Shown in pieces: positions 1,025 through 48,240 of a DNA stretch of 64,000 nt. Below the pieces are notes generated by a model. That model was not told the origin of the DNA, did no database searches, and was given only the letters and a program-made list of their open reading frames with translations. The stretch is from contig RDEW01000081.1 of NCBI GenBank assembly GCA_011109175.1, positions 31,430 through 95,429 on the forward strand, read 5' to 3'. Source of the DNA: Dicyema japonicum (Eukaryota > Animalia > Dicyemida). The position numbers and the translations under genes are program-made. Every line of letters starts with the position of its first letter. Position 1 is the stretch's first letter.

Positions 1025-4000
1025 CTACGTCACTGAGTTACTAAACGACTGGTGAAGCTGGGAAATCCGTCCTGCTAAGAAGTCCTTTATCCATGTGAAG
1101 AGTTTCTTTTGGATGTCAGCAGCCGCATGCCTTGATAGGAGGGCATCATGCCACACGCTATCGAATGCTTTGGACTGCTCCAAACACACCAGGTTGACTT
1201 GCCTCTTGAATTCCAGGCCTCTCAGTACGATCGAATACATGTGGTGGATACAATCCGTGCAAAATTTCTCAGATCTGAGCCACATTGTTCCGCGAGAAGG
1301 AAACAACTCTTTTCCATGTGCTCGTTTAGTCTTTTGAAGATAATTCTCTCAGCAATCTTGGAGATAGAGCAATTTAGGCTGATCGGCCTATAGTTAAAAG
1401 GGTCCCTCCCCGACTTTCTTGGTTTAAGTATCATACTGACAATAAAGGATTTCCAGCGTCTTGTGACATATTTATGATCAATGCTTGCGTTGAATAAGTT
1501 CCTTAGTAAGAGCAGCAAATCCTCTAAACCTTCCTTGAACATTCTCATGCTAACGCTTATGTCTAGGAGCGTGAGCTTTGCATTCTCTAATAGCAACTAC
1601 GACGTCTTCTGTCGTCATCCTTATATTGGTATCTTTGAGATCATCCAGAGAATAGGTAATAAGTTTTTGTGAAGCTACCAACTCTTCCTTCGGAATCAGC
1701 TTCATTGGGTTGACTCTTTGGATACGGTCTAGTGCTTCTTAAAGATATCTGGGGCATCTTCTGTAGAATATGACCCACCTTCTGGCTTGTTCAAAAAGAT
1801 TTTCATTTTTTCCCTCTTCTGGCCAGTTATTCTTTGTAAATCTTCCAGTACGAGGAGTCTTTGGTTTTTAGTTTGCTTGCCTCGACCTTCTAATATCGTT
1901 CTAGAGCCAGTCTTGTTCCCTCTTCAATGGCTTTTTTGATTATCTTTAGTTGATCGGTCAATGTAATCCGGTCGATCCAGTCAACACATCTTCTGGGTTT
2001 GGTCTTAGTCGGTTTCTCTCTTCGGGAATAAGGTCCGTCCTTCCAGTTTTTGAGGTTCCTAGATATGTATCTTCTGTAGTGATTTCAATTTATCGTTGAA
2101 ATGTCATATCCTGTGAACACTCACTCAGTAGTGTCCGGAGCCAGGTTCAGTGTCATCACTTGCGGAATGTGGTCGCTCCCGATGTCCCACATGGTCTTCT
2201 GTCTCTCCACATAAGTGTAGAGCGGTGGTGAAACAAGGAACACGCCAAGCATAACTCCACCATGGTGAGAGAAGTGATTTGGCTCCTCCGACGTCATGAT
2301 TTCAAAGCCAGTTTTATCACCCAATTTTCCTAGTCTGAGTTCATCCCCGTTAGTTCTGAGACACCCATATTTAACGTTCTTGGCGTTTAGATCTTCTACC
2401 AGGACAGACATATCGTTTCTCACAAAAAATTCTTCAATTTCTGTAGAACACTTTCTGAGGTCTTTCGAATACATGCCTCCAACGTGTATCCATGAGCCAC
2501 AGCAGCGCACCTCAACGGAAACAAATTCACATTGTGTATTCATAATAACTTTTGGCTCACGTATCTGTAGGTCATTACTGTAGAATATTGTGGTTCCAGC
2601 ACCAACATCAGAATCTTCTACCCACGGTATTTTTATAGAATTAAATCTTTGTAGCATTGTAGTGTTGGTCTTTTTCACCTTGGTTTTGTTTACCACTTGG
2701 ATGTCAATCCTGGTGGTTGACAGAAGTAATGCTAAGTCATGACGTCTCTTCCTCAGGAATCGGGCATTCACCAGCACTATCTTGATGTCTCTTCTCAATT
2801 CGCTTTTAGGTAGCCCGGGTTCAGCTCTACCATTCTTTGTAAATCCACCCCGAGTATACCGCTTAGTTCTTTTAGTCTTGATCAGAGCTTTTCAAAAAAT
2901 AATTCTCGCGGCACACTAATCGTAAAAAAAATAATCCACGGCACACATTAAAAAATAAAAAATTAAATTTTTAAGATGTGTAAAAAAACTAAGTACAAAA
3001 ATTGGTAATTTAATGCCCAAATTTTTATTAATAGAAAAATGAAATCTTAATTATAATTGTTTTTGCATATATTCTCCGACAAAGATATCTTCATTATTTT
3101 TTGTTCATATTTATGACTAAACATAATCCGAGCAATAATACGACAAGCAGGGATTATCAAGTTTTCGCCAATAGTGTGAGGTTTTAGTTGTTTTGTTATC
3201 AATCCTGATATCAGGTATGAACATTTCAATGATTCCTTTGTGTTTACTAAAGTTTCACTGAACATCATTTGACTAGATCTACGATTCATAGTAAAAACTA
3301 AATAATAGTTGTGTTGTTTTTTCAAATGGATAAAATAATCCACAGATTTTTCGGAATAGTCCGGATGCTTGGAAGTAAAATGTCTCTTTAGTTTGCTAAA
3401 AACCATAGCATCATTTGCAAAGACTCTCATGCAAATTAGACATTGAGGTAGTTTATTTTTATCTTTGCATATAAATCCAAATGACAAAAAAGAATCTTTA
3501 TAAAAACGACGAACTGATCCATAAGCACGTTGATGCGGACGTTATTAAAAAATTAATAAATAATAGTTAACCAATGTAAATGTCATTAATATATAATAAA
3601 AAAATGATTATTTTAATTTTAGTAATTATTTTAATTTGTTTATCTTTTTAAATTAATTAGGTCAAAAATGCATATAAATTTATTCAAATTTTTATTTGGC
3701 AGGCGGCACACTAGAAATTGTCTCGCGGCACACTTAGTGTGCCACGGCACACCGTTTGACAACCTCTGGTCTTGATATTATTTCCTCCAGTTCTTTTGCA
3801 ATTTTCCTTGGTATATTTTTTTGGGTAGCCAAGCCGATTCTCGTGAATGAGGATCTGGTCCATTTTTGTTAATCCTTGGGCCAATTATTCTTTTTTGGGC
3901 CACTTTGTTGGTTAAAGCAGAGGTTATTCATCTGTTTCGGTTCCATATTGTTGGTTCGGAGACTTAAGTTTCGCCTGGCCTCCACTAGAACAGGGCATCC

Positions 4001-4680
4001 TCAATAGTTTAACGCACTTGGGTTCGAGACCCGGGTTCGCACTGCACTTGGAGGTGTCATGCTCTCCCGCATAACGGAAGCATTTCTTCCTTCCTGTGCA
4101 CTGGTATGCAAGGTGACCGACATGCTGACAGTTGTAGCAGATCGGCGGTCTTCTTCTCATCCACTCACAGGAGATCTTGTTCGTTCCAATGTAGAAGCCA
4201 CAACGTATTAGCGATGCGGCCTCCGATTTATTATTAATTAAGGCTTTCGCCATTGGCATGGCCTGCGATCCTCTGGACATTTGGGTAACTTTTGTAGTTG
4301 ATGGAACCATCTCCTGGAGGTAGTCAGAGAGGTCGTCCTCCTTCACCCAGAAGGGCAGGTTCCTGATACAATCTCTGACGGTTTGTTGAAATTGTTCTGA
4401 ATCGGTGGTTGTCCGGACCAAAGGAGAAGTCTCATTCACGGTCTCCATAAAGGCGGTCATGTGGGGGTTGTCTCGGAAATCTATTCGGAAGAAAGCTCAT
4501 CTGTGGCTTATCTTCATACATCCGTACTGGTCATAGAGGTATAGAATGTTCGCGATCCTTATCGCACTGGTAGAGGAATCGACTGTGATCAATAGAGACG
4601 AGTTGTCTGTGGAATTAGCCTTCATGGGTTCGTTTGCTTGTTTGGCCAATTCTGTTGAGTCGAGTTTCATAGGTTCACCT
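1025..4680 (-). mobile_element. Jockey/I-group non-LTR retrotransposon, family A copy 1 (degenerate, internally deleted, interrupted by a hAT element)
   Basis: ORF1 with CCHC knuckles (CYNCQHVGHLAYQC, 3924-4460). APE endonuclease (IVLVNAR...DLNAK...SDH, 2121-2798). RT motifs PFNYRPISL (1222-1596) and LEQSKAFDSVWH (1025-1306). Confidence 0.9.
2883..3768 (-). mobile_element. Internally deleted Buster/Charlie-like hAT DNA transposon
   Basis: TIRs CAGAGCTTTTCAAA and (reverse complement) CAGAGGTTGTCAAA. Perfect 8-bp TSD GTCTTGAT at 2875-2882 and 3769-3776. ORF 3047-3487 has the BED-finger/Buster N-terminus (PQCLIC...KLKRHFTSKH; KPHTIGENLIIPAC). Subterminal CGGCACAC repeats. Confidence 0.92.
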
Positions 4681-5309: not shown

Positions 5310-5699
5310 GATTAACCAGCCTAAAAAAAGAAAAATTACAAAAGTCAATTATAAAGATAGAGCATTAAATGAATAAATCAATTAGTCGGAAACTTTTGAT
5401 CGATTCACTACCATCTTCCTATTCATTCTTTTATAATAAGGAGTATTCAGATCGACCCTCAGAAAATAAAATTTGAAATCATCTTTAGTAAAATTAAAGG
5501 CAAAAAATTTTTACTAATGTTCGGGTTGCTCCGATACTTCAATAGTATTTTCCCTTAAACGGACTAACACATACAAAAAAATAAAAGGATGAGTGAGGGG
5601 TTTGATTGTATAAAAACACAGCTTTTCGAATATGCTTTATCGGAAACTATCATTTTTGATAAACTTTCTGTGATCGTCTGATTGAAACAATCTTCTGAC

Positions 5700-6900
5700 T
5701 TTGATTGTTGAGTCTTCCATGGAATTGAATAATTCTGAAATCTTCACACAATTTCTGATATGACCGTTCTTATTTTCTATTCCGTTGTCGCATTAGAGAC
5801 TTTGACATATGACATCTATTTTCACGGAAAAACGAATTTTTTTAATTTTTGTCTAAAACATGGTGACGTTGTATTGAGCAAAAATAGGAAACCTTTACAT
5901 CGGTCGTTTCTTAGATTTCCCAGAAAATCATTCGTGAAGTTAATTGTCCTCGTACAAGCCGTTACTACCCTATCACATGGATTGAAAAGATTAAGGTGTC
6001 GAAGGTAACTCGAAGATCTTTTGGGTTTTTTACGGAGAAGTTTTCTCATCTAGCTTGACGTCAATTAATAATTTCTCTTGTCTTCTGTATGACGTAAAAA
6101 GGATCAAACTGACTTCTCTGGGCTAGCTCTCAATTGATTTCAATAAAACAACAAAATCAGATTGTTCAGACTGTCCTGTAATCTTCGCGTCAATAATACT
6201 CACATCCAACGACTATATAACCCGCGTAAGATAGTAATATGCCGTTGTCATCTTGTGGAATTGCTAGGTCATTCGTAATAAGATTGAATAAGAGGGGAGA
6301 TTATGGGGAACCTTTAGTAACGCAATTTAGTGAAAGTCTCAATGCAGACATCGATTACCCTGGTGTACTCAGGAAATTCACCAACTATAACTTCAGGAAA
6401 AAATTGTGGGATGATCTCACACCAATCAAAGTAAATACCTTCTGGATTTGAATTGACAATCGACTTTATTTCCAATTCTCTTGTTTAGACCGAATCTTAT
6501 AAATTCCTTTAATGTATTTAGGTTCATCGCTTATCTTTGAAACAATGCTAAAACCTGGCATCTGGGAAAGAAGTGCAGATGAGTGTCATAACCAGCCTTT
6601 ATAGGATTCTTGACTGGACAAACTCTAACACAATGCTTCATGAATTTGTTCAAATCCATCTGGTAATCAAGGTCTCCCAGTATTCTTACTGTCAGCGTTT
6701 ATAATGTTCCGTAATTTCTTTCACATCTTGTAAAGTTATCTAATTGTTCATGGCAGTGGATATGCGACTCAGTTTCTTTCCTTGTAAACGTTTTTCACTT
6801 TCGGAGATCTAGTATTAATGTTAATTTGTATCTACTATAGGGACTACCATATATGGGTTTTGGAATCTACATGTGCAGTAACTAAGTACTGGTCTTTATT
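5700..6900 (-). mobile_element. Heavily decayed LINE RT/C-terminal remnant (duplicated at ~29640-30800)
   Basis: Broken frames give KGSP*SPLLFNL (QGSPLSPLLFN motif), SYAGYIVV (YADD region) and PKDLRVTFDT (YLGVTFD thumb motif). Confidence 0.55.
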
Positions 6901-8182
6901 CACGAATTGAAATCCTCTATAGCTACTACCACATCATTATTTTTAAGTTTCGTCTCCAGAATTGATCCTTAATGTATCACTTAAAGTTAAGTTATTATTA
7001 TACAATCTTTTAACAGTTTACGGATAACTAACTTCATAACTATTCAAATAAATGTGTTTTATTTCCTTTTAAAATTTGTAATGATAATTAAAAAATCACT
7101 ATTATTTTTCATAATGCTTCATTTAAAAAAATAAAGTTATTAAAATGTCGCGTAGTCAATTGGTCACATGTTTACCAGCGGTCTGTTTTATATTCCTAAA
7201 AGATCCAGTTTGACTACGCAGTCATTTTTTCTTACTTTACAATTTTGTTAATAATTTACCTTTTAAATGCAAAAATTTAATTTTTTTAGTTTTCGTCTTC
7301 AGAATTGATCCTCAATGTATCACTTTAAGTCAAAGCCGAGGATCCGAAAAGAAGGAAGTATAGAAGCATCTCTGAATAATTAATGTGAACATTGATCTAT
7401 AGATCTAGAAAAATGTTATAAGATAAAAGAATATTCGAAATTTTATTTATAAAATAAATTAAAAATTAGATGAGATAAATAAATATTAGAAATTTCATTA
7501 CAGTGGCTTTGATGGAGGTTCGTTCCTTTATTGAGGTTCGTTCCTTAAAACTTCTGTAGAGTTTTTGTATATGTGGGTTGGAAGTCGCCAGTTTCAAAAT
7601 TAGTTCCACGTGTGGTGTATCTAAATGATCAGATCTTAGCACTTCTTAAAAAAATAGTCAAATGTCGGGAATTTTATTTAATATTCCAGGAAATACCGGA
7701 AAGATGTTAAGAGTTAATTGACGGCTAATTAAGGTAAATCCACTTCTCACGATCCTTTTTAATCATCAAGTCTATCCATATCCGTAGTTGTGGGAACCCC
7801 TCAAATCGAAAGGTGAAGAGAGTGATTTTTTGGTGTTTTTTAGACTAATGGATCACGTGACGGCTCTTAGGATTCAAAGTAGGCACATAGCAGTGAGTGG
7901 TCCTGAATCGTACCCACAGCTAACTCTAGATTGTATTACATGATCTATATTAACAGATGGAAATAAGGTCGCGAATTGTTTAGAGAAGGGAGAATTTCTG
8001 GAGTGTTGAAACAGAGAAACGGGATAAAGGCAACTCCGAGTATTATTGGTGTTTGATCACATAAAAAACTGATTGAGTTGGGGTAAGATAAGAATTTTTT
8101 CAAATTTTAAGGTTAAAAATGTTTGCCCAAATCATATTAAACAAATATAATACAAACCAACAGAATCACAAATCAAAGAAAA

Positions 8183-10561
8183 TTAAACTAAGTCCCTTCG
8201 TTGTTCCTCAGTCACTGCTTCTTTTTTCTCACTAGCCTTGACATTGCTCTCCACTTGACAGTGCAGCTTCTCCATCCTATTCCTCAGTCCATTAAAATCA
8301 ATCCTCATTCTCTGGATGTCATACCCCTTATCATTTTCACTGGTAAACTAAAAGTGACACGACCCATACTTCGGTGAAATTCTCGGATTCCACAAATTTG
8401 CCCTCAAATCCGTTTATTTTACTAACGAACTCCCTCACAGACACCGATTGCTCATCAAAGTTCTTCATTTCCAAAATTAATTTTGCACACTTTGAGCTTT
8501 CTTCCAACCACGAGTCAATTTTAATACACAAATCGTGGAAACTCTCAGCAGCGACACAAGTCTACAATAATAATAAGTTAAATAACCTTCTCCTGTTCAT
8601 TCAAATCCCGCAAAAGCTTAGCCCTTTTATCATGACAAACCTCAATCATCATTTCTTTAGTCTCCTCTAACTGTTGAAGACTCGAACATGTGTAAACATT
8701 CTCTTCCACGTAAGGAAGTTCATTCTTTTTACAGATGCATTGAATCCGCTTGACAATACCCCTGATATTCTTAAGTTTTATATCTGCTTTCTCCACATTC
8801 TTTTCAAACGAGTCCAGATAGTCCAACCACTTATTAATAATATTGACTGATGACACCAACAGATCATCCCGCATGTCTTCGATCCAAAAGTCCATCCATT
8901 TCTTTAAAATCTCCAAATATATATTCATCATACAGTCACATCCACTGCATAGTCAAACAACAGTGTATCAATTTGCTCCAAAACTAGCATTCGATGTTTA
9001 ATCTGCTTATACAATTTGGTGTTAAAATCCACAAACTCACTAAAAATGTTCTTAATCTCTTCAAGACGATTATCAACGAGACATATCAACGAATATCCAT
9101 TATCACGCAAGTCTTTAGCATAATCATCAAAACTCCTAATTATTGGGTCATCCATTGCGTTCATAACAATCCTAATTTCGTTAATCGTAGCCTTGATCAC
9201 TCAATATGAGTACCTTCAAGTTAGACAATCCACGTGAGTTTATTTTTATCTTCATATTCGCCATCCACGCTTCATAACTGTCACATTTGCGATGGAAATT
9301 CATAGCCAGACTTTCAATCAACTTAAGTCTACAACTTATCAAACACGTGACCTGGTACTTTCGGAATTTATCCATTCCTTGTAACTTTGAGACAAATCCA
9401 CCAAACTAGACCAGTCCTCGATAATATTATTTAGTTGTTCCTCTTCAAACTCACTCCTAGCTCTCAAAATGTTGGAGATGTTCTCCAATTCAACTTTCTG
9501 AGAATACTTTGATGGCATCTCTTGCATGGAAAACCATCGGTATTTCTCTAGCTGTTCCCTCACCTCATCAGAACTCCCAAATTCTGGTCGATTGGACAGC
9601 CAGTCTTTCTTGACATTGATCCACGAGATCATCTCGGGGATATCCTCAAGCAGTGGCAAGGAAATCTCACTCTCGCTTACTCCTCGTAGCAAAGAGTATG
9701 CATTCTGTTCTGTCTTGATTGTCTACCAGTAACACAACTCTACACTAATTCATCATGTATAAATTTTTGATAAAGCGAAGAGACATATGTCATAACAGAA
9801 CGCTCATCTGCACGCCAAGCCATATCTAAGATGATAAACCTAGTTACCCTCGGGGTCAAGCATACAGGGTATATCGAGATGCTCCTCTGCTACTTGGAAT
9901 GCTCGCTTTAGGTTCTCTTCCGATGTTTCAGGCTTGGGTAAATACGATTAATGCCTGAAATCCGTCAAATTCTATTAGATCTGGTCTGTGTCTATGGATT
10001 ATTGCCGCAAAGGCTAGTCCGTCCTTAAAACTAGTATGGAAGTTATTGACGTTCACTCCTTCATACCCATCAGTCTTTCGTTGACACCACAAAAGCAGCC
10101 CTTCCATGGCAAATTTATCTGTTGATTTAAAAATCCAGCCCTACTTTCCATCGTGATGTCCTGTATTGCGAACCGTAAAATTATAGCCCAGATCACCATC
10201 AGTATAACTTTGACATTTCCGTCGAGTATGTCTGAAAAAAATCAGTACATCAGTACCTTCTGCTACAACTGAAAGAGTTTCACTCCCTTGTTGATCATGA
10301 ATTTAAGAGCCTGATTGAGGTTCATTATTTGATGAAGCCTGAGGAATTTGGTTTCAACCAGAGGAATTTTCTCGTTGGAAATTACTTCAAGCAGACGAAT
10401 TAGTACAAATCCATTGGAGAAATCAGTATCAAAGTTAACTATTTGGCAGTTGATTTTCCGGAGGTGGGAATTACACCAAGCTGTAAACACCTTCATTTAT
10501 AATTTAATTTTACTTTTTTTTGTTGTTTCTAGCTTGAATGATATAGAATATGATCGCACAT
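8183..10561 (-). pseudogene. ACTN: Alpha-actinin (CH1-CH2, 4 spectrin repeats, no EF-hand domain), 11 tiny introns, disabled copy 1
   Basis: [49 protein letters not shown]...[30 protein letters not shown] and spectrin-repeat segments become colinear with alpha-actinin after removing introns at 10491-10513, 10232-10256, 10119-10144, 9933-9954, 9826-9847, 9723-9745, 9329-9351, 9192-9213, 8911-8933, 8562-8586 and 8348-8369. Lesions: GAG>TAG at 10529-10531 and a 1-nt deletion near 10272. Restored length ~707 aa. Confidence 0.9.
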
Positions 10562-10719
10562 CTTCACAAACTTAAGTTAGTTACGTAAAATTTTATTAAA
10601 AATGTTGGTTAGCCAATTTATAAATATTTTTTACTTAAAATTTAGAACTTATTTTTTATCTAAAAATTTATGATTTTCTACCTATAAATGATTTTAAATT
10701 TATTGGCCACGTGGTGCAA

Positions 10720-11420
10720 CAGTGGGCCCAAAAAGTCATGGCACCACTTAATAAATTTTAATATTTTACTTTTAATTACTTTTTTTACAAAATTAAAAAG
10801 TATTAAGATATTGAAAATAATTTTAAATTTTTAAATTTTAATATTTGGTTAAGAAAAAACAATTTTTTTATATTTTTAGTGTTATTTAATGGTCAAAAAG
10901 TGTTGGCACGGTGCGTCATTAATTTTTTGTTGCATGACCTATTGCAACAATTACTGCCTCTAATCTTCTTTTGTATGTTTCTATTAATTTACTCACGGCA
11001 GAATACTATTAACTACATTATATTTTTTGGTCTTCGGATTCCTATCTATATTTTCAACGTTTTCCATAAATTTTCAATTGGGTTTAAGTCGGGAGGCCAT
11101 TTCAGAACATTTAGTTGTAATTTTAGTTTTATGTTTCGGATCGTTATTATGTTGAAAACGTCCAATTATTTTTTAACTTTAATATATTGGTGGATGAAAT
11201 TTAACAATTTTTCAAAATTACGACGTACTTTTCGGTATTCAATATTTCATCTATGAAAAATAGTTCACCCACTCCTTGAGATGAAAAACACGCCCATAAC
11301 ATTATGCTGTTTCCTCCGTGCTTAACTGTAGGCATGGTACATTTTTTGTCATATTCTTGATTTTTTTCTTCCAAATATATCAAAAAGTTCAACTTTGGTT
11401 TCATCTGATCATAATATATT
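10720..11420 (-). mobile_element. Tc1-family transposon remnant (3' half of transposase plus one terminus)
   Basis: [46 protein letters not shown]...ATK*. Terminus CAGTGGGCCCAAAAAGTCATGGCACC at 10720 with an internal related motif GGTCAAAAAGTGTTGGCAC near 10890. Confidence 0.85.
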
Positions 11421-11796
11421 CATTAATATTTTGTTTATTCGCTGGATATTTTTTTAATCGTTGAATATTTGGTTAGGAATCTAAGTGTTCTTGAAGAGAT
11501 CTAAAGAAACTTCACAATGTCATTGAAGATACAAAAATCTCTAAGTAGTAGTCAAATGGTTGAGAAAATGATGTATCTCTAATGCATACGTATGTCTGCC
11601 TAGGTTTGTGATAGAAAAAGTTTTTGTCTTCTTTCTTTTCGTAGCATAAACAATGTGACAGACTTAGGGGTATCAATAACCAGAATTTATTACCAAATGA
11701 AATAGAGGATGAACGAAGATCAAAGCTGCGGCATTATTATTAGGACGAAAGAAGATCAAAGTTTTCCTAAACTTGATAAATTATTTTAAATAGCGG

Positions 11797-11905
11797 GTGC
11801 CCAAGTAAAACGTAGTAAGACAATACTAGTGGATTCAGAGTTAAGATTGCTTAGTCGATTTTAATAGTGTGTGCCCAAGTAAAGCGTAGTAAGACAGTAC
11901 TGGTG
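11797..11905 (+). repeat. Direct repeat of ~35 bp, period 74
   Basis: GTGCCCAAGTAAA(A/G)CGTAGTAAGACA(A/G)TACT(A/G)GTG at 11797 and 11871. The assembly gap in copy 2 starts between the two units. Confidence 0.7.
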
Positions 11906-13539: not shown

Positions 13540-15180
13540 GGAAGAACATTCAATACCCACGATTGATCCCAAGAAACACGACCTCGCGGAAGTGTGCAAA
13601 GTTACGGACGTACTAACGAAACCTAATGCTCTTGACAACAGGGCTCTATTGATCACAGTGGATTCTACTATGAGTGCGATAAAAATTGCAAACGTTTTAC
13701 GATACTATGACCAATACAGATCTTTGAGGATGAGCCACAGAGGACCGGGCTTCTTCCGGCTAGATTTTATGGACAACTCACACATGGCCACCTTCATGGA
13801 GACCATAAATGAGACCTATCCCTTTGGTCGTGACAACCACAACTTCAGGGCAATCTCAACCAAACCATCTGAGATTGTCCTAGGAACCTTCTATTCTGGG
13901 TGAAGAAAGACGACCTTTTGGATTACCTCCAGGAGATGGCTTCCTCAGCCACACAGGTCACGCGAATGTTCAGAGGATCGTAAGCCATGCCAATGGCGAA
14001 GATCTTGATTAACAGTAAACCAAAGGCCACATCATTAATACGCTGTGGCTTCTTCATCGGAACAAACAAGATCTCTTGTGAGTGGAAGAGAAGAGGACCG
14101 CCAATCTGCTACAACTGTCAGCAGGTCGGTCATTTTGCATACCAGTGCACGGGAAAGAAGTAATGTTTCCGTTGCGCGGGAGAACATGACACCTCCAAAT
14201 GCAATGCGGATACGGATGCTGAACCTAAGTGTATAAACTGCGGATCAACAAAACACGGTGCAAGATATGGAGGATGCCCTGTGCTCGTGGAGGCCAGGCG
14301 AAAGTTAAATCCTCCAACTAAAAATCCGGAAATGAAACCTATGAACGCCATAGACGACAAATTTGAAATACTAACACGAAAAAGAATTATTGGTCCAAGG
14401 ACTAATAAGCTCTCTTCAGCTAATCTTCCACAGGAATCGGCTTGGCAAACCAACGAAAAAATACCAGGAAGAATCAAAAAAGGAACTAGAGGATATCATA
14501 ACAAGACTGAAAGAAATAAGCAACGTACTAGGAGTGGATTTACGGGAAATGGTGGATCTGGCCACCAAAAAGAAATTTGAAAAGAAACCTAAAGATAGTG
14601 CTGGTGAACGCCCGATCCCTGAAGAAGAGGCGTGATGACCTAACACTACTCATGTCGTCCACCAAGATTGACATCCTGGTGGTCAATGAGACCAAAATAA
14701 AAAGGATCAACACAGCAACAATAAAAGGTTATAATTCAATAGAAATACCATGGGTCGAAAGCCCAGAGGCTGGTACTGGAACCACATTGTTCTACAACGA
14801 TGTTCTACATGTACGTGAGCCAAGAGTTACCTCGAACACACATTGTGAATTTGTTACTATTGAGATACGCTGTTGTAACCGTTGGATACATATTGGAGAA
14901 ATGTACTCCAAGGACCTAAGAAAATGCTCCACAGAAATCAAAAATTTCTTCGCAGAGAACAACTTGTCTATCCTAGTGGGGGATCTGAACGCCAAGAACT
15001 CTAAATATAGATGCATCAAAACATACAAAGATGGAATCAGGTTAAGAAGACTAAGTGACAAGGCAGGCTTCGAGGTAATAACCTCGGAAAGCCAAATCAC
15101 TACTTGTACCACATCGGAAACATGCTTGGGGTCTTCCTGGTGTCACCACTACTATGCACTTATGTGGAGCAACCAATGAT
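13540..15180 (+). mobile_element. Jockey/I-group LINE family A copy 2 (ORF1 and APE, 3' truncated)
   Basis: Frameshifted ORF1 with CCHC motifs, then APE (IVLVNARSLKKRRDDL...GDLNAKN, 14577-15179). Homologous to 2121-4680. Confidence 0.88.
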
Positions 15181-15339
15181 CATGATAGATTTTGTTAAAG
15201 TGCAACTGCCCTTCCTCTCTGTTTGTTATTGAAGTTTTCAATCAAAATTTTTAATTTGTCTGAAATGTCTGCTTCCCAGAGTCCATACTCTTTTGCTTCT
15301 TGCCGTTTTTTTCTGATCTCCTTCTCCAAAGCATGTATG

Positions 15340-16199: not shown

Positions 16200-18950
16200 C
16201 AAGGTATCGTCTCAGGGAGTATTAAAAAAGAGCTAAAGGAAATAGTATCAAGACTGAAGGAACTAAGTAACATACTCGGAGTGGATTTACGCAATATGGT
16301 GGACCTGGCCATGGAGAGTCCGGGCCACCAACAAGAAAATTGAAAAGAAACTTGATAGTGCTGGTGAACGCCCGATCCCTAAAGAAGAGGCGTCATGACC
16401 TGGCACTACTACTATCGTCCACCAAGATTGACATCCTGGTGGTCAACGAGACCAAAGTGAAAAAGACCAACAACACAATGCTAGAGGGATACAATTCTAT
16501 AGAAATTCCATGGGTCGAAGGTGCAGAAGCTGGTACTGGAACCACATTGTTCTACAGTGAAGTTCTACAGATACGTGAGCCAAAAATTATTATGAATACA
16601 CACTGTGAATTTGTTTCCGTCGAGGTGAGATGCTGCGGCAGTTGGAATGTATTCAAAAGACCTTAGAAAGTGTTCCGCAGAAATTGAAGAATTCTTCACA
16701 AGAAATGATATGTCTATTCTAGTGGGTGATCTAAATGCCAAAAACATTGAATATGGATGCCTCGGTACTAACGATGATGGAATCAGACTGATGAAATTGA
16801 GTGATAAAACTGGATTTGAGATTTTGACATCGGAAAAACCGAATCATTACTCGCACTACGGGGGAGACATGCTTGGGGTGTTCCTGGTGTCACCATCACT
16901 CTACAATTATGTAGAAAAGCAGATGATCATGTGGGACATCGGAAGTGATCATATACCCCAAGAGATGTTATTGAACCTAGCTCCAGACTCCATGGACTCT
17001 GTGTTTACAGGTTACGACCTAACAAGAATAAACTGGGAACACTACAGAAGGTACATATCAAGAAACCTCAAACACTGGAAGATTAAAGATTATTCCCGAA
17101 GTGATATCGACATCATAGACAATGAACTCTCTATCATGATGGAGACATATTTAATGCTTTACGCAAGAAGGAGATCCTCAAGTACTAATCATGGAAAGAG
17201 CATCAGTCTTTCGAATTCCACATATCTTTGATCAATGAAAGGAATCGCCTGAGGACTAAACTCAGAAGATGTGTGGACTGGATAGACCGGATTGCACTGA
17301 CCGGACAATTGAAGATAACAAAAAACGCCATTGAAGAAGGAATAAGACTATCTCAAGAACAATGTTTGAGGGTAGAAGCAAGCAAACTAAACACCAAAGA
17401 CCCCTCGTTCTGGAAGTTCTACAAAAAAATAACTAGCCAGAAAAGGAATGACATAAAAATCTCCTTGACCAAGCCAGAAGGTGGACTGTGTTCTATGGAA
17501 GAAGCCCCAGATATTTTTAAGAAACAACTGGACCGTATTCAGGGGATCAACCCGATGGAGCTTATTCCGAGGGAGACGTTAGATTCTTCACGTGAAATTT
17601 TAACCTACTGTTTGGACGATCTTAAAAATACTGAAATGAAAATAACCACGGATGAAGTCATGGCTGCAATCATGAAATGCAAGGCTAACGTGCTGGACTT
17701 GACCATCTAAGCATGAGATTGTTCAAGGAAGCCCCAGAGGCTCTATTTCCGATACTGAAGAATTTATTCAATGCAAGCATTCATCATGGTCATGTCCCAA
17801 AACGCTGGAAATCTTTCATTGTCAGAATGATACTGAAACCGGGAAAATCGAGGAGGGACCCTCTCAGCTATAGGCCGATAAGCTTCATCTGTTCGATCTC
17901 CAAGATTATCTAACGAATTATCTTCAGAAGGCTTAACGACCACATAGAAGAAAGTGGTTTCTTCCTCGCAGAACAATGGGGCTTCAGACCTGGAAAATCA
18001 TGCACGGACTGTATCTACCAGATGCATTCAACGGTATTGAGAGGTCTGGAAGTCAAAAGACTAGTCAACCTGGTATGTTTGGATCTGTCCAAGGCTTTTG
18101 ATAGTGTGTGGCACGAAGCATTCCTATCAAGGCTAGCAGCTGCTCAGATCCAAAAGAAACTTCTCATATGGATAAAAGATTTCCTAACAAAACGGATTTC
18201 CCAAGTACGTGTTAAAGCACATATGTCGAAAAACATCATACTGAAGAGGGGAGTTCCTCAGGGTTCCGTCCTGAGCCCTCTGCTATTCAACATATTCCTA
18301 TCAGATTTTCCAACTCCACCGGATATAACACAAAACTATTGATATACGCCGATGATATTCTGATCACAGATACATCTGGCAAATCAACTCTTTCGGAGAA
18401 AAGGATCATGTCATTCATTAGACAAGTTCAGGACTGGTGCACAAAAAGAGGGATGAGATTGTCTACTGAGAAATCCAGCTCTCTACGAGTAAGTCGCCTA
18501 AGGAGGCATCAGAAGCAGCCTTACTCATTAGAGATTCCTAAAGTAAACTCAATGCGCTACCTCGGGATAGCAATCGATGGAATGGTTCCTTCATGGAGGA
18601 CATAAGACAAAGAAGGAAGAAGGCGCTTCAAGCACTCTTATGTACGAGAAAGTTGTTTGTAAGCCTGGAAACCTTCTTGTTCATCTTCATGAGGATCATC
18701 CTACCGGAACTGCTATATGGATGCGTAGCATGGTTTTTCTCTTGCCAAAGAGAAAGAAGAATGTTTCTCATGGAAAAAACCAGAAGGTCGGCAATAAAGT
18801 TTGCTTTAGGAAAAGGCTCTGGGATGCTCTCAGTACTGAAGAAGACATGATTCTAACTCCTGTTAAAAACATCGTAGAGAAAAGAATCAATGCGATCCGA
18901 CGATAGAAGATAACTAAATGGAGTGTGGATACATCAGAAGTGTCCAGGCC
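16200..18950 (+). mobile_element. Jockey/I-group LINE family A copy 3 (ORF1 tail plus nearly complete, frameshifted ORF2)
   Basis: APE 16340-17000. RT motifs DPLSYRPIS, CLDLSKAFDSVWH, GVPQGSVLSPLLFNIF, IYADDILI, RYLGIAID. Jockey-like C-terminus (ILPELLYGCVAW). Confidence 0.92.
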
Positions 18951-23640: not shown

Positions 23641-26565
23641 TTATTATTTATTTAAGCACTTCACAAGAGCCATACTAATTATAGCCCGCATGTGCAGCAA
23701 AAGAAACAAGGTTAGATGTCATCCTTTTCCATGCTCCCCTGTTCCTAGCCAAGGCTCTCATGCTGTCCAGGTCGTCGGCATTTGTTAGGTTTTTTTTTAT
23801 ACTGACCAGGTCTTTTTGTAAGACTATTGGCAGTGTTGTTCTTGGTCTTCCCCGATAGCGGCCTTCTTCACTAACATAGTATGTTTCCATAGATATGTTC
23901 GGTGGGGAAGTTAATTCCATCCTCAGCACGTGTCCGAAGAGCCTCCATCGGGATTCCAGTACTTCTAAGCTGATAGGTCTAGTGCTGCATCTCTTATATA
24001 AAGCATTCCTAGATATTCTCGTAGGCCAAGTAGTTCCTGTTATTTTTCTCAGCTGACCTCTGTGGAACGAGTCTAGTTTTTCATATCCGCTGATGAGGTC
24101 GCCCAAGTTCCAGCGTTATATAAAAGTACGGGTTTTATGAATGAGTCGTATAGTAGGATTCTCATTTTCGTGTCGATGCCTTTTTGATTGAGCCATAAAT
24201 TCTTCAGTTTATATAACGCAGCATTGGCTAGAGTTTTCCTACGTAAAATATCTTCGCTATCTCCCATAAGTGAACCGAGTTTCTTTACTTGTCGCCACTT
24301 CTCTTCTAGGACGTTACTCATCCTTCTTATCTCTGTGAGTTCTGTTTTTCTCTGTTCACAGTAAGAAACCATTTCCCTAGTACATCTGGTGCTTTTTCTA
24401 ATAGGTTTTCCAGGACCTCTTTGTCTTCAGAAATTAGGTCTACATCGTCCGCGTAGATTACTTCTTCCGTCTTTCCTTGGTATGACGGTCTAAGTTCCCT
24501 CATAGCGGCTTCCAAATAAATTGTGAATAGTAGAGGAGAAAGAGAGTCTCCTTGTGGAGTGCCCGTATTTGTTTCAAATTTTCTTGAATAGGTTTTTCCG
24601 ACTCTCACAAGGAGCTCAGTGTTAGAAAGTAGAATTCGGATCATCCTTAGACTCGATTCATCAAGAAATCCGCCAGTACCCCCATTAATTTGTTCCTGTT
24701 AACCGTATCAAAAGCTCTTGATAGGTCAATTCCCAAAATATTGGTGGCGTTACGGTATCTTTGATATGTTGCACACCTCCATCTGTGACTCCAGACCGCA
24801 TCAGCTGTGGATCTCCCTTCTCGAAAACCACTTTGACTATCTGGTAGGTATTTGTAAGCAGGTCCTTTTATTCGTTCAAGCACAATGTTTGCCAAGACTT
24901 TGCGTAATGAATTTAGTAGTATGATGGGTCGCAAATTTTCGAGCGGTCCTCTGTTTTTGTTAGTTTTTTGTATGGGGATTAGTAGTCCCGTACCCAGAGG
25001 TAGAGTTGAGTTAGTTGAAAACATTTCATTTAGTAGTGTAGCGATTTTTTCAAAAAGGAGGTCAGGGCCGTATTTCAGTAGTTCTGGGTTTATCGCATCT
25101 GGTCCGGGGCTTCTGTTATTCTTGAGTTTTCGGCAGGCCGTTTTGATTTCCTCGGCCGTGATTGGTATCTTAAGGGGTCTTGGCCTTCCATCAAATGGGT
25201 GGATTTCTATGGTTTTGATGTTGAAAAGCTTCTCAAAGTGAGCCGCGATGGCTTCAGTTTGTTCTTTGGTGTTCAGTATCAGCTTACCGTTCTCGTCTTT
25301 TATGGTTAGTCGACTTCGGTTTGTTCGCCGCAGCAAACGGGCAGCGACGTACACCTGTGCGTTGTCTTTCACTTTGTTTACTTCTTCTATACAGGAGGCT
25401 ATTTCTTCTATGAAAAGCTTCTTGTTCAGACCCTTTATTTTTCTTCTGACACGTTGTCTTTCGCCTTGAAGGGCTTTTATCGCATTAGTGTCAGTGGCAT
25501 TTGATTTTCTCATATTTATTTCTTTTAGACTTTTCGCAAGCTCAGGAACATCTGGATGAATAGCCTTCAGGTGCATTTTACTATTCTCCCTTTTGCCAAG
25601 ACATGCTTCAGCAGCTTCGTTGATGGTGTCCTTTGTGCGTTTCCAGGCGTCTTCTAGCGTGGTATCCACCAATACGTCCTGCAAATTAGTCTGAATGTAT
25701 TGTTGATATCTCTCAGTAGTCTCCGGTTGAGAAATCAGCCTTTCAGTCGCGTAGTCGCCTCTGATTTTTCAAATTCGTGATTTTTTGCATTCTGTATTTA
25801 ATGGCATGTTTTTTCAGGGTGAAGGTCGCAATAACCATCTTGTGGTCGCTGACAGTCGTCGAGCCTTCATATGAACGTGCGTTTACTAGAAGGTGTTTGT
25901 CTTTAGCCCGGCATATGACATAATCGATTTGGTTGTATATTGGGACCAGCTTTCCTTCTGAGTTCCTTCGCTTCCCCATCCACGTAGTTTTGTGGCAGGC
26001 AGGATGCGTAAATGCAGTATTGCATAGGAAAAGGTTGTTTGCCATACAAAAGTGACCAAGTATTGTCCCGGGTAAATTTCTTATTCCACGTCCATGTTCT
26101 CCCAAGAAAACATCATCCGGGTTATTCTTCATCCCGACTTTTGCATTCAAATCCCAGCAATGAGTATTAGTGATGACGACTCATATTCGTTGTACGTCCG
26201 TAACAGTGTTGAATAGAAGTCGTCTAGTTCTGTCGGATCTTTCGCTACTCTCCCGCAGTGTGGCGCATAAACATTTACAATTGTCAGAAAGCTCTTCGAA
26301 GGAGGTAAGTCGTTTAGCCGGATTTGTATAACACAGATCCTGTCATTCACACTCCATATACGGTGGACTGCACTTGTCAGCTTTGAGTGGATGGCAAATC
26401 CAAGTCCATAATGTCTTGAGTCGCTCGGCTGACATATAATTCGATATTCGCCAAAGTTTTCATCAAGGCTACAAGTGACTTTCGTCTCTTGTAGACACCC
26501 AATAGAACGTCGTATCTCTCCAGGTCATCACAGAGAATCTTCCTCGACCAGGTCGTAGATAAGCC
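23641..26565 (-). mobile_element. RTE-clade non-LTR retrotransposon, nearly complete single ORF (frameshifted, 5' end cut at the duplication junction)
   Basis: APE (IGCLQETK, VYAPH, DFNAKVG-like, NQIDY, SDHKMV). RT (NLRPIILL, QSGFREGRST, IDLSRAFD, GTPQGDSLSPLLF, YADD). RTE C-terminus (SRWRLFGHVLR...GRPRTT). (TAA)n-like tail. Confidence 0.92.
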
Positions 26566-27660
26566 TATCCAGAGAATAGGTAATTACCTATCCAGAGAAT
26601 AGGTAATAAGTTTTTGTAAAGCTACCAACTCTTCCTTCGGAATCAGCTTCATTGGGTTGATTCTTTGGATACGGTCTAGTGCTTCTTAAAGATATCTGGG
26701 GCATTTTCTGTAGAATATGACCCACCTTCTGGCTTGTTCAAAAAGATTTTCATTTTTTCCCTCTTCTGGGCAGTTATTCTTTTTGTAAATCTTCCAGTAC
26801 GAAGAGTCTTTGGTCTTTAGTTTGCTTGCCTCGACCTTCTAATATCGTTCTAGAGCCAGTCTTGTTCCCTCTTCAATGGCTTTTTGATTATCTTTAGTTG
26901 ATCAGTCAATGTAATCCGGTCGATCCAGTCAACACATCTTCTGGTTTGGTCTTAGTCGGTTTCTCTCTTCGGAATAAGGTCCGTCCTTCCAGTTTTTGAG
27001 GTTCCTAGATATGTATCTTCTGTAGTGATTTCAATTTATCGTTGAAATGTCATATCCTTGTGAACACTCACTCAGTAGTGTCCGGAGCCAGGTTCAGTGT
27101 CATCACTTGCGGAATGTGGTCGCTTCCGATGTCCCACATGGTCTTCTGCCTCTCCACATAAGTGTAGAGCGGTGTGAGACAAGGAACACGCCAAGCATAA
27201 CTCCACCATGGTGAGAGAAGTGATTTGGCTCCTCCGACGTCATGATTTCAAAGCCAGTTTTATCACCCAAGCCAGTTTTATCGGAAATCTATTCGGAAGA
27301 AAGCTCATCTGTGGCTTATCTTCATACATCCGTACTGGTCATAAAGGTATAGAATGTCGCGATCCTTATCGCACTGGTAGAGGAATCGACTGTGATCAAT
27401 AGAGACGAGTTGTCTGTGGAATTAGCCTTCATGGGTTCGTTTGCTTGTTTGGCCAATTCTGTTGAGTCGAGTTTCATAGGTTCACCTCAAATCTCAAATA
27501 GCTCATTCTCGGACTGAATCGACTCTGTAGTTCCTTTTAACAAAAATTTAAAAATCGTATCTCAACCTTAACAAAATTCATCTTGAAAGATTCCAATACA
27601 AACCAGGGATCACTAGCAAGCTTTTCTGATAAGGATTTTGGCTTATTTCCTAAGCAAATT

Positions 27661-28796
27661 CAAGATGTATACTGGGATCTTGATTTGCGGACTGAGAGGT
27701 ATTCCTTCCGAACGTCAGGGTAACAAGGATCTCCAATTTCAAATGTTTTCCGATTTATTTCTTTTTGACTTGGCAATTCAATGCGACAAAAAAGACTTGA
27801 TTCTGTTTTTATACTCCAAAAATCGATGCTTACAGACAGCCACCTGAAGATCTGAAAAATCGTTTAATCAGTTGATTGGATATAAAATTTCGACTCACTT
27901 TCGACTCCCCTATGACCTTCAGGCAATACGGGACCGTGTTACTCTCTCGCCAAAGAAAAATCAATTCTTTAAAGCCCACCTTGGACACTACAGAAGGTCT
28001 TTTTTTGACGTTAGATCCCTGAGGGAGCTAGGATCCACCTTAAAATTCGAGAAATGGTATTTTTCCTCGAAGAAGATAGAATAAAATCTTTATTGAAAAA
28101 ATCAAGAGTAGCGGCCAGTGAGTAGAGGTAGGTAAGAAGTTATGCACTGAGCTAGACAAGGAAGAAGATAAACCGCTTAAACTGATTAATGCGTGGTGGA
28201 GGAGAGGATCAATGATTTCATTGTGAGACACTTCTATCACTACTTTGCCTCATGGTGGATGAAATCCCTTGTTTTCCTTCATGTGAACATGGACGAGGTG
28301 AAAGACTCACATGTCATATACTCGAAGTTGAGAATAAGAGAGTTTAGGATTCTCTAATGTCCGGGTTCCAATCTCGGCAAGCTTAAGGGGTATGTAGGAT
28401 GATATTTAATATGATCCTATGTTTACAACAATTTGAGAAGTTATTTATGATGCCTTGACTCTCTTCCTAAGATTACTTGGCCATTCTGTTCTTTTTCCTT
28501 TTAGAATCATTTTAACCACGTGGTGTCATATGGCTAATCGATGTAAGATTTATCTTCCTTTTAGCGGCGTCACTGCATCCACCTTACAAAGGAGTATCAT
28601 GGTAATGAAAGGCATGCATAGTAAAAAAACTCGAGAAACTAGCATAGTAAAGGATAGAGTAAACACTCACAGAGCAGTCGAATATCACGGAATTGTTAAT
28701 TTAGGGAAGGAATATTTGAAATTTTATAGAATTTTGAGTGCTGGAGGACTGCGGTAGCTGCGATAAATGAACCGTAATCAAAAAGAAGATAAAAGT
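27661..28796 (-). other. Segment present only in copy 2, with a possible LTR-retrotransposon integrase C-terminal remnant
   Basis: TFEIGDPCYP..RK reads on across 27660 into KLASDPWFVLE, resembling F-x-VGD-x-V...KL-x-P...GPF-x-V. The continuity suggests a deletion in copy 1 rather than an insertion in copy 2. Confidence 0.35.
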
Positions 28797-31700
28797 AGAA
28801 AAAAGCACGTAATGAGGTTAGTTTTGAGTCGACTTATAGGGTTTCCCGACCATTAACACCACTTTCCAGATCAATAGCGTAGCTTTCCGAACCATTACCG
28901 TCATTTTTCCCATTAATAGTGTAACTTTCAAGTCAATAAGGGTAAAACTCATTTAAGGTCGGATTTTCAGTATCCTAAAGACCAAGAAGAGCTATTTCAG
29001 GATCTTCTACTTATATTACTGTAATTTAAATAAAAGTTTGTTTTTACTTAAAAAAATTTTTTACACTTAAAAAATTTAGTCAGGAAACCCAATATCTGCT
29101 GAAGTTATGCTATACACTAGAAAGTGGCAAATAGAATATTTAAACAAATTAGGCTACAGGAATCGTAAAACTTAAATTAATCAAGAATTAGTTTGATTGT
29201 TAACTACAATAATCGTAAAACTTAAATTAATCAAGAATTTATTTGATTGTTGATTAACCAGCCTAAAAAAGAAAAATTACAAAAGTCAATTATAAAGATA
29301 GAGCATTAAATGAATAAATCAATTAGTCGGAAACTTTTGATCGATTCACTACCATCTTCCTATTCATTCTTTTATAATAAGGAGTATTCAGATCGACCCT
29401 CAGAAAATTAAATTTGAAATCATCTTTAGTAAAATTAAAGGCATAAATTTTTACTAATGTTCGGGTTGCTCCGATACTTCAATAGTATTTTCCCTTAAAC
29501 GGACTAACACATACAAAAAATAAAAGGATGAGTGAGGGGTTTGATTGTATAAAAACACAGCTTTTCGAATATGCTTTATCGGAAACTATCATTTTTGATA
29601 AACTTTCTGTGATCGTCTGATTGAAACAATCTTCTGACTTGTTGAGTCTTCCATGGAATTGAATAATTCTGAAATCTTCACACAATTTCTGATATGACCG
29701 TTCTTATTTTCTATTCCGTTGTCGCATTAGAGACTTTGACATAGGACATCTATTTTCACGGAAAAACGAATTTTTTTAATTTTTGTCTAAAACATGGTGA
29801 CGTTGTATTGAGCAAAAATAGGAAACCTTTACATCGGTCGTTTCTTAGATTTCCCAGAAAATCATTCGTGAAGTTAATTGTCCTCGTACAAGCCGTTACT
29901 ACCCTATCACATGGATTGAAAAGATTAAGGTGTCGAAGGTAACTCGAAGATCTTTTGGGTTTTTTACGGGGAAGTTTTCTCATCTAGCTTGACGTCAATT
30001 AATAATTTCTCTTGTCTTCTGTATGACGTAAAAAGGATCAAACTGACTTCTCTGGGCTAGCTCTCAATTGATTTCAATAAAGCCACAAACTCAGATTGTT
30101 CAGACTGTCCTGTGATCTTCGCGTCAATAATACTCACATCCAACGACTATATAACCCGCGTAAGATAGTAATATGCCGTTGTAATCTTGTGGAATTGGTA
30201 GATCATTCCCAATAAGATTGAATAAGAGGGGAGGTTGTGGGGAACCTTTAGTAAAGCAATTTAGTGAAAGTCTCAATGCAGACATCGATTACCCTGGTGT
30301 ACTCAGGAAATTCACCAACTATAACTTCAGGAAAAAATTGTGGGATGATCTCACACCAATCAAAGTAAATACCTTCTGGATTTGAATTGACAATCGACTT
30401 TTATTCCAATTCTCTTGTTTAGACCGAATCTTATAAATTCCTTTAATGTATTTAGGTCCATCGCTTATCTTTGAAACAATGCTAAAACCTGGCATCTGGG
30501 AAACAAGTGCAGATGAGTGCCTTTAGGATTCTTGACTGGACAAACTCTAACACAATGCTTCATGAATTTGTTCAGATCCATCTGGTAATCAAGGTCTCCC
30601 AGTATTCTTACTGTCAGCGTTTATAATGTTCCGTAATTTCTTTCACATCTTGTAAAGTTATCTAGTTCATGGCAATGGATATGCGACTCAGTTTCTTTCC
30701 TTGTAAACGTTTTTCACTTTCGGAGATCTAGTATTAATGTTAATTTGTATCTACTATAGGGACTACCATATATTGGTTTTGGAATCTACATGTGCAGTAA
30801 CTAAGTACTGGTCTTTATTCACGAATTGAAATCCTCTATAGCTACTACCACATCATTATTTTTAAGTTTCGTCTTCAGAATTGATCCTTAATGTATCACT
30901 TAAAGTTAAGTTATTATTATACAATCTTTGAACAGTTTACGGATAACTAACTTCATAACTATTCAAATAAATGTGTTTTATTTTCTTTTAAAATTTGTAA
31001 TGATAATTAAAAAATCACTATTATTTTTCATAATGCTTCATTTAAAAAAATAAAGTTATTAAAATGTCGCGTAGTCAATTGGTCACATGTTTACCAGCGG
31101 TCTGTTTTATATTCCTAAAAGATCCAGTTTTACTACGCAGTCATTTTTTCTTATTTTACAATTTTGTTAATAATTTACCTTTTAAATGCAAAAATTTAAT
31201 TTTTTTAGTTTTCGTCTTCAGAATTGATCCTCAATGTATCACTTTAAGTCAAAGCCGAGGATCCGAAAAGAAGGAAGTATAGAAGCATCTCTGAATAATT
31301 AATGTGAACATTGATCTATAGATCTAGAAAAATGTTATAAGATAAAAGAATATTCGAAATTTTATTTATAAAATAAATTAAAAATTAGATGAGATAAATA
31401 AATATTAGAAATTTCATTACAGTGGCTTTGATGGAGGTTCGTTCCTTTATTGAGCCATAAAACTTCTGTAGAGTTTTGGTATATGTGGGTTGGAAGTCAC
31501 CAGTTTCAAAATTAGTTCCACGTGTGGTGTATCTGGATGATCAGATCTTAGCACTTCTTAAAAAAATAGTCAAATGTCGGGAATTTTATTTAATATTCCA
31601 GGAAATACCGGAAAGATGTTAAGAGTTAATTGACGGCTAATTAAGGTAAATCCACTTCTCACGATCCTTTTTAATCATCAAGCCTATCCATATCCGTAGT

Positions 31701-35891: not shown

Positions 35892-35944
35892 TTATGCTTT
35901 TTCTACCTATAAATGATTTTCAATTTATTGGCCATGTGGTGCAA

Positions 35945-47099: not shown

Positions 47100-48240
47100 T
47101 CTCTTCTTCGTAAAAAGCCCCAATTACAAAGCGAGTTTCCACAAGCAATGTAATAAATCACCGATTCTTCTCGTTTTTCTTTCGTGTTCGTCATCAAATT
47201 CAGATGCTAAATCCAATCCATGTGCGAGTTTAATTGCATAATTTAGACTAAAGTTAAAAACTTTAACTTTCCAGACTTCATCCATTTTACAAGGCATTTT
47301 CCGTCTTGATTGGTTGTTACACAACCATAGTCAGTATGTTTAGTGATCATGTCACCAACAAGGATTAAATATTCATTGTTTTCCATAAATTTGTCAACAA
47401 TCCATGGATACTCTCGTAGTTTTTTAGAATAGATTCCTCCGATAATTATCCATCCATGGTTGTTTGTAGTTGAATGCTTGCTAGTTCACAAAGATTTTCT
47501 TCATTGATCGTGGGTAGTCTTGTATTTAAAGAAGTTTTGTAGTAAATTGAAGTTCCTGTTCCAGCACAAGAACTAGTTTTACAAAAAAATCTAATGAGTC
47601 GTATCCATCAATTTTAAATGGTCTTTTCTTCAATTTAGATTCGTTTATAATTATAACTTCCATCTGGATCGTGCTGGCTATAGCAACCAGCACTGAGGCC
47701 CGTTTCCGAAGAGAACGGGCATTAGTCAGGGTTATCCTGACTACTTCTGGTTTTTTCGGGGGCTGCCCTCTCTTCTTAAGAGCGCCACTCTCTTCTCTGT
47801 TGAAGCTTCTACTGTTTTTTTAGAAGGTTTCTTATTATATGTTCTATTCTAGCCAGTTTTAATTTTTTATTCGTTCCAATTTTGGAAACTTCACTTTCTC
47901 CATTATGGCCAATTTCTCGTTTTAGAGATATTTTTCCATTCGATTCTTTCCTTTCTTGATCAATTTTTTTTTTTTCTTCGTATGTTAGCTTCAACAGCCT
48001 TGGAACATCTTCCATAATTGGCAAAGTGGCTGGATGAACCGCAATTCAAACGACTTATTATTGTTTGTAACCGGACACTGCGATCTTCTATGTGGACCAG
48101 AACAAACAAGGCATCTTTCAACATATCTCCATTAGGCCTGCAGATGTTTATCAACCTCGTACTATATTCCTTCGTCTTGTAGCACCAGTGGCACCACTTA
48201 CTCACCAGTGGAAAAATTGTCCCTTGCATAACACAGAAAC
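47100..48240 (-). mobile_element. Diverged relative of LINE family A (ORF1 zinc knuckles plus APE), decayed
   Basis: RCLVCSGPHRRSQC, CGSSSHFANYGRC; ITLTNARSLRKRA...INESKL; IIGGIYSKKL...LVGDM. Confidence 0.7.

Follow-up and report, generated by a model that had tools for sequence, protein, structure and literature searches.

A candidate −1 frameshift cassette at the ORF1–ORF2 junction of a LINE family in Dicyema japonicum

Described routes to a second ORF and the LINE family of the window

The translation of ORF2 from the bicistronic RNA of LINEs has long posed a question, and the cases that have been studied use unconventional reinitiation. In SART1, a LINE of Bombyx mori, stop-start coupling needs an overlapping UAAUG together with a nearby RNA structure (PMC3894237; PMC10275272). 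The TURBS signals of RNA viruses also combine an AUGA or UAAUG overlap with structured RNA shortly upstream, and reinitiation of this type retains as much as about 45% of its activity with near-cognate start codons (PMC10275272). Retroviruses and LTR retrotransposons express gag-pol by −1 frameshifting at an in-phase slippery heptamer, which is followed by a spacer of about 5–9 nt and a stable RNA structure such as a stem-loop and lies in a short overlap with the −1 polymerase ORF; the outcome is a minority product in which the structural protein is fused to the polymerase. Among non-LTR elements, ORF2 of the Dictyostelium retrotransposons TRE5-A and TRE3-A is stated to require a −1 frameshift (PMC5911963), and a gag frameshift is described for Drosophila HeT-A (PMC5009743). 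These precedents share frameshift-dependent expression with the proposal made below, so that the idea of a frameshifting LINE is not new in kind, but they come from distant hosts and clades, and the passages on them offer no comparative evidence of a heptamer combined with a helix.

The junction described here resembles gag-pol in its candidate heptamer, spacer of 7–8 nt, predicted stem-loop and short −1 overlap, and its predicted outcome would be the same kind of minority fusion. Unlike gag-pol, it belongs to a non-LTR LINE with no protease to separate the fusion, its heptamer is one base off the X_XXY_YYZ consensus, and the presumed stimulator is a simple and often weak hairpin. Its arrangement can be likened to that of SART1, in that ORF2 and the ORF1 stop have nucleotides in common near a predicted RNA structure. 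In relatives, the overlap is AUGA with ORF2 in −1, whereas the window copies have TTG rather than AUG, and the subgroup to which they belong carries a slippery heptamer 50–58 nt upstream, which coupling does not need. The likeness to TURBS signals extends to overlap, predicted upstream structure and a possible near-cognate restart; TURBS occur in unrelated elements and are defined by complementarity to 18S rRNA.

The window, a 64,000-nucleotide stretch of Dicyema japonicum DNA, contains three copies of one LINE family, which self-BLAST placed at 73–77% DNA identity to one another.

About 4679–1059, minus strand: copy 1 of the LINE (self-BLAST)
2795..4679, minus strand: ORF1 remnant of copy 1 with a CCHC knuckle, interrupted by a single nested insertion of foreign DNA and carrying at least one stop
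1059..2798, minus strand: ORF2 remnant of copy 1 (APE and part of RT), beginning at TTGA, broken by at least two frame changes and at least three stops
About 13592–15184, plus strand: copy 2 of the LINE (self-BLAST)
13592..14635, plus strand: ORF1 remnant of copy 2, broken by at least two stops and one frame change
14577..15184, plus strand: ORF2 remnant of copy 2, first ~200 codons only, beginning at TTGA
16213 to about 18906, plus strand: copy 3 of the LINE (self-BLAST)
16213..16343, plus strand: 3′ remnant of copy 3 ORF1, the element being 5′-truncated within the end of ORF1
16340..18906, plus strand: ORF2 remnant of copy 3 (APE and RT), broken by at least five frame changes and at least one in-frame stop

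Exo_endo_phos_2 and RVT_1 were detected in ORF2 of copies 1 and 3, and zf-CCHC, the CCHC knuckle, was detected in ORF1 of copy 1. The CCHC-bearing, gag-like ORF1 of the window family is 34% identical to ORF1 of L004, one of the Octopus sinensis relatives considered below. Judged by these domains, the family is an APE-type non-LTR retrotransposon: its ORF2 runs from an apurinic-type endonuclease to a reverse transcriptase, and the CCHC knuckle lies in a gag-like ORF1. The copies are all dead (pseudogenes), and the value of the finding is therefore comparative rather than functional. Third codon positions carry an excess of the differences between copies (in one example, 102 ORF2 codons differ 16, 11 and 28 times at positions 1, 2 and 3), indicating that the divergence arose partly under selection and partly through decay.

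Heptamer, hairpins and stop codon at the window junctions

The elements of the putative cassette and its surroundings are located as follows.

16283..16289, plus strand: candidate slippery heptamer G_GAT_TTA of copy 3, in ORF1 phase
14536..14542, plus strand: heptamer GGATTTA of copy 2
2840..2846, minus strand: heptamer GGATTTA of copy 1
16297..16330, plus strand: predicted hairpin of copy 3, 34 nt, after a 7-nt spacer from the heptamer, −18.1 kcal/mol, z −2.8
14550..14567, plus strand: predicted hairpin of copy 2, 6 bp, after a 7-nt spacer, −9.2 kcal/mol, z −1.1
2809..2831, minus strand: predicted hairpin of copy 1, after an 8-nt spacer, −8.4 kcal/mol, z −1.3, carrying a G-C to A-U swap
16340..16343, plus strand: TTGA of copy 3, in which the ORF1 stop TGA overlaps an ORF2-frame TTG; relatives have ATGA at this place
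16364..16396, plus strand: weaker predicted hairpin over the ORF2 codons Ala-Arg-Ser and those that follow

An earlier note on this DNA had placed GGATTTA in codon phase with ORF1 in every copy, and we located it at each of the three sites. It had also proposed that, in copies 1 and 3, no stop interrupts the −1 frame on its way from the heptamer into the APE domain, which our reading of the frames upheld, and that ORF2 has no AUG; we found none in this interval when it was read in the ORF2 frame. Copy 2 is indeed broken, as claimed: the −1 frame does not stay open from its heptamer to the APE domain, and a single length difference from the other copies, which changes the frame, has moved its ORF2 out of −1.

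On the 5′ side of the heptamer, with codons read in the GAT-TTA frame, copies 1 and 3 differ at 1, 1 and 5 first, second and third positions, respectively, and copies 2 and 3 differ at 6, 1 and 8. Given this third-position bias, we counted the GAT-TTA frame as coding, and the selected frame upstream of the heptamer is, on this substitution pattern, the ORF1 frame that reads GAT-TTA. The 5′ truncation point of copy 3 lies shortly upstream of the heptamer.

The heptamer had further been described as conserved amid variable third positions. Its presence in all three copies stands, but conservation beyond chance does not: third positions differ by ~27% per pair of copies, so that three invariant synonymous sites in three copies would be expected roughly one time in four, and heptamer conservation within the window is not significant by itself. 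The extended pattern GGATTTAC-N7-GGT occurs three times in the window compared to 0.01 expected occurrences, a count that shows only that the three sites are homologous. As a slippery sequence, G_GAT_TTA has a good A-site half and a P-site half (GGA) that lacks a homotriplet, and one paper treated GGATTTA as a point-mutated and presumably inactive slippery site (PMC2805616).

The 34-nt hairpin proposed for copy 3 was recovered at 16297–16330, and its predicted fold is more stable than 99.8% of the 64-nt windows of the element, whereas the predicted hairpins of copies 1 and 2 are unremarkable by the same comparison. A spacer of exactly 7 nt, claimed for every copy, holds for copies 2 and 3 but is 8 nt in copy 1. 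The compensatory G-C to A-U change in the outer helix of copy 1 is a real double change; it keeps the pair and alters both residues in the ORF2 frame. In that frame, the arms of the helix are Gly-Gly and Pro-Pro codons. A scan of 13–20 kb against Rfam at a permissive threshold returned no frameshift element and no other relevant family.

Every window copy ends ORF1 in TTGA, with the stop TGA overlapping a TTG of the ORF2 frame; the earlier note, which set termination-reinitiation aside, had overlooked this. The endonuclease motif begins 8–9 codons after the overlap. TTG is a near-cognate start codon.

A second LINE family in the window also has a heptamer close to ORF2.

47723..47756, minus strand: AAAAAAC, then a 6-nt spacer, then an 8-bp hairpin immediately upstream of ORF2 of the second LINE family

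Owing to decay of the copy, the phase of this AAAAAAC relative to the true ORF1 frame is uncertain.

Junctions of the Octopus sinensis relatives

We searched 1.8 billion representative proteins exhaustively with the endonuclease (APE) ORF of copy 1 as the query and found only five close relatives, with identities of 33–41%, each a single prediction from the Octopus sinensis assembly GCA_006345805.1; by themselves, these matches would suggest a cephalopod or another mollusc as the probable host. The five loci compared at the junction are L001–L005. An ORF1 profile search gave one extra match, a truncated ORF1 with no ORF2 behind it. Two more distant relatives are uninformative about the junction, since the ORFs of L007 are separated by a gap of about 140 nt and L008 comes without upstream sequence; P0006 is a distant single-ORF element. 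A cluster look-up among the relatives returned no clade names.

ORF1 is intact in L002 and L003, where about 470 codons run up to a TGA that overlaps the ATG of ORF2 (ATGA), and ORF2 lies in the −1 frame. The same overlap is present in L004 and L005, giving four of the five octopus relatives with ORF2 in −1; in L001, the body of ORF1 is in another frame through a frame change. From these junctions, the default arrangement of the group is an overlapping stop-start (AUGA). We considered the possibility that ORF1 and ORF2 share one frame, which copy 2 and L004 would suggest as they stand, and rejected it because the intact ORF1s of L002 and L003 place ORF2 at −1 and because of the third-position pattern in the GAT-TTA frame.

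For comparison between families, junctions were anchored at the Asn codon of the ORF2 motif N-A-R. An in-phase heptamer lies 78 nt before this codon in window copy 1 (GGATTTA), L001 (CCCTTTA) and L004 (AAATTTA), and at −84 in copy 3; no in-phase heptamer was found at the junctions of L002, L003 and L005. The L001 (C_CCT_TTA) and L004 (A_AAT_TTA) heptamers are canonical X_XXY_YYZ sites with different X triplets that specify different ORF1 amino acids, as would be expected under selection for slipperiness and not for protein sequence. Canonical heptamers occur in phase at 17 of 5300 codon positions in the ORFs of these elements, so that two at one aligned site would arise by chance with a probability of order 1e-5, or an estimated ~1e-3 or less after correction for shared descent of TTTA and for about 25 positions. 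The comparison covers three heptamer-bearing families, all represented by decayed copies, and in this small sample the heptamer signal appears to have been kept in the relatives beyond the needs of coding.

In the window family, L001 and L004, the heptamer is followed by a spacer of 7–8 nt and then by GGUGG(C)/(G)CCACC, a helix whose interior differs from family to family. Changes in the outer helix comprise one G-C to A-U (window copy 1) and one G-C to G-U (L004), and the stability of the L004 hairpin is unremarkable. MAFFT misplaced the 3′ arm in an alignment of the cassette across families, and RNAalifold, applied to a hairpin on the other side of the stop (below), gave no consensus; the helices were therefore compared from the fold of each individual sequence. 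At most junctions, the 3′ end of the hairpin lies 5–18 nt before the ORF1 stop. L003 and L005, which have no heptamer, carry strong hairpins ending 5–9 nt before ATGA; the hairpin thus need not be a frameshift stimulator, and the upstream hairpin may serve stop-start coupling.

Similarity in the ORF2 frame, as detected by tblastn, starts exactly at the TTT of the heptamer for P0001 compared to L004 and for P0001 compared to window copy 1. Between the heptamer and the ORF1 stop, L001 and L004 are identical at 9/16 positions in the ORF2 frame, compared to 7/15 and 6/15 in the other frames, and the comparison of synonymous changes gives 3 for the ORF2 frame versus 1; the ORF2 frame is thus slightly the best conserved over this interval. 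Upstream of the heptamer, no frame could be aligned between families, nor could the ORF1 tails.

Every heptamer-bearing family can be read in −1 without a stop from the heptamer on to ORF2, as seen in L001, L004 and window copies 1 and 3; the open stretch of L004 starts at precisely the heptamer codon. Among the three heptamer-free families, L002 and L005 have the −1 frame closed immediately upstream of the AUG. All three heptamer-free families have an AUG at the ORF1 stop, compared to one of the three that bear a heptamer (TTGA, CTGA and ATGA in the latter), and L004 carries both the heptamer and AUGA.

A counterpart of the hairpin at 16364..16396 was predicted at all nine junctions studied, about 25–30 nt 3′ of the stop. 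Stability percentiles for this downstream hairpin ranged from 0.002 to 0.2, and a Fisher combination worked by hand over seven families gave ~6e-5. RNAalifold recovered zero consensus pairs and no common register for it.

Frameshifting weighed against reinitiation and coding constraint

We give about an even chance to the reading in which heptamer, spacer and hairpin are what remains of a −1 frameshift cassette that worked in active ancestors, either alone or with residual reinitiation. Under this reading, ribosomes translating ORF1 would reach G_GAU_UUA with the hairpin positioned at the entrance of the mRNA channel, and a minority would slip back by one base, translate a short linker rich in Gly and Pro and go on into the endonuclease-reverse transcriptase, yielding an ORF1–ORF2 fusion; ribosomes that did not slip would terminate 17–19 codons after the heptamer, at UGA. 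What the sequences themselves show is the anatomy of the junction, its reading phase and its conservation among relatives; slippage, its efficiency and the fusion protein are what we infer from them. The earlier note had suggested that this LINE may make such a fusion by frameshifting. That suggestion gains from the canonical heptamers of L001 and L004, which share site, phase and helix with the window family, and loses from the noncanonical window heptamer, the weakness of two of the three window hairpins and the TTGA/AUGA overlap.

That overlap is the core of a rival explanation, which we regard as a real possibility but a somewhat doubtful one, in which termination-reinitiation accounts for ORF2 expression on its own. 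Ribosomes would stop at UGA and a fraction would restart at the overlapping AUGA or UUGA codon with the help of flanking hairpins, and the heptamer would be a by-product of coding and RNA structure. The AUGA overlap in L002, L003, L004 and L005, with ORF2 in −1 and with ORF1 of L002 and L003 intact up to the stop, fits this account, as do TTGA at the homologous place in every window copy, hairpins close before the stop at most junctions that are strong in the heptamer-free L003 and L005, and a second hairpin predicted downstream at each of the nine junctions. It also has precedents in the overlap and RNA structure of SART1 and the near-cognate starts of TURBS (PMC3894237; PMC10275272). Reinitiation alone, however, gives no reason for the canonical heptamers that two sister families share at one aligned site, for similarity in the ORF2 frame that sets in with the heptamer, or for a −1 frame without stops ahead of the restart codon. 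Moreover, the AUG has been lost in three families, where TTG, CTG and GTA are found, and GTA is not a near-cognate start; the downstream hairpin also lacks a common register. Coupling and frameshifting could have been combined, and a frameshift cassette would then probably have been layered on ancestral stop-start (AUGA) coupling.

A third account invokes no dedicated signal at all: the copies are pseudogenes, common descent and the coding needs of ORF1 preserved the heptamer, and the hairpin reflects the natural complementarity of Gly-Gly and Pro-Pro codons (GGN GGN / CCN CCN). Heptamer conservation in the window that is within chance (about one in four), the broken state of every window copy, the Gly-Gly and Pro-Pro identity of the helix arms in the ORF2 frame, hairpin z-scores that are modest in most copies and the lack of an Rfam match are all consistent with it. 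We nevertheless consider it improbable, since it does not account for the coincidence of heptamers across families, for a G-C to A-U swap that alters both ORF2-frame amino acids yet keeps the pair, or for an island of nucleotide similarity that starts at the heptamer while the ORF1 tails cannot be aligned between families; an ORF2 without an AUG would, in addition, still need some route of expression.

The most economical history, on the frameshift reading, would begin with AUGA coupling in a LINE lineage of cephalopod type; one subgroup probably gained the cassette in addition, and the window family would subsequently have lost the AUG of the stop-start arrangement. We propose only tentatively, at a little less than an even chance, that a subgroup of mollusc (cephalopod-type) LINEs replaced or supplemented AUGA coupling with a retrovirus-style −1 frameshift that makes an ORF1p–ORF2p fusion. 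If this is true, the conserved slippery site and hairpin would represent a second LINE solution to the translation of ORF2 and the first metazoan LINE frameshift signal with comparative backing. A covalent ORF1–ORF2 fusion would be implied, with a bearing on cis-preference and on ORF1:ORF2 stoichiometry. The group would also document how a single LINE lineage changed its recoding mechanism, and it would provide a natural series for the evolution of recoding signals, from AUGA only, through AUGA plus heptamer, to a heptamer without AUG.

Transposon remains around the LINE copies

The region is rich in transposons, and no host genes were recognised in it. Several remains, together with a segmental duplication and an overlap of ORFs, were mapped in the window, which contains 878 Ns:

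3047-3487, minus: 146-codon ORF that weakly matches a BED/C2H2-type zinc finger in Pfam
24647-25684, minus: ORF bearing RVT_1
50422-51249, plus: MULE transposase ORF
55687-56019: ORF1-like fragment, kin to LINE copy 2 (67% over 320 nt)
1643-11838 and 26590-37059: segmental duplication, ~10 kb, 97-99% identity
36988-37975: four overlapping ORFs of ~300 codons each, on both strands, within 1 kb

The zinc-finger ORF sits within foreign DNA inserted into ORF1 of LINE copy 1 and probably represents a piece of a DNA transposon. The segmental duplication takes in part of the same LINE copy; its second duplicate (26590-37059) lacks the ORF1-ORF2 junction. The overlap of four ORFs suggests a low-complexity or repetitive stretch. 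At the Octopus sinensis locus L003, a second LINE (L003:2-2479; 90% to protein P0004) lies 5' of the locus's own element, and its ORF2 runs for 825 codons with no interruption and continues past the contig end.

Junction of a more distant LINE copy

The window also holds a fourth LINE copy, with 37% to protein P0001:

~47250-48120, minus: more distant LINE copy
47723-47756, minus: AAAAAAC, 6-nt spacer and 8-bp hairpin at its ORF1 end/ORF2 start

The hairpin has a z of -3.1, and the stop (GTAG) has neither an ATG nor a near-cognate codon. Decay of this copy, and the placement of its CCHC ORF in a different frame, leave the phase of the AAAAAAC uncertain.

Predicted hairpin on the ORF2 motif N-A-R-S

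Folding placed a hairpin, beginning at the Ala-Arg codons of the ORF2 motif N-A-R-S, at all junctions studied (the window copies and octopus loci L001-L005):

2739-2771, minus: LINE copy 1
14603-14640, plus: LINE copy 2
16364-16396, plus: LINE copy 3
L001:4134-4160: octopus L001, with counterparts in L002-L005

The predicted L001 fold is strongly stable (-25.8 kcal/mol). Across the junctions compared, no consensus fold was found for this hairpin because the 3' arms differ in register. The predicted N-A-R-S hairpin is reminiscent of the structure that SART1 requires for coupling.
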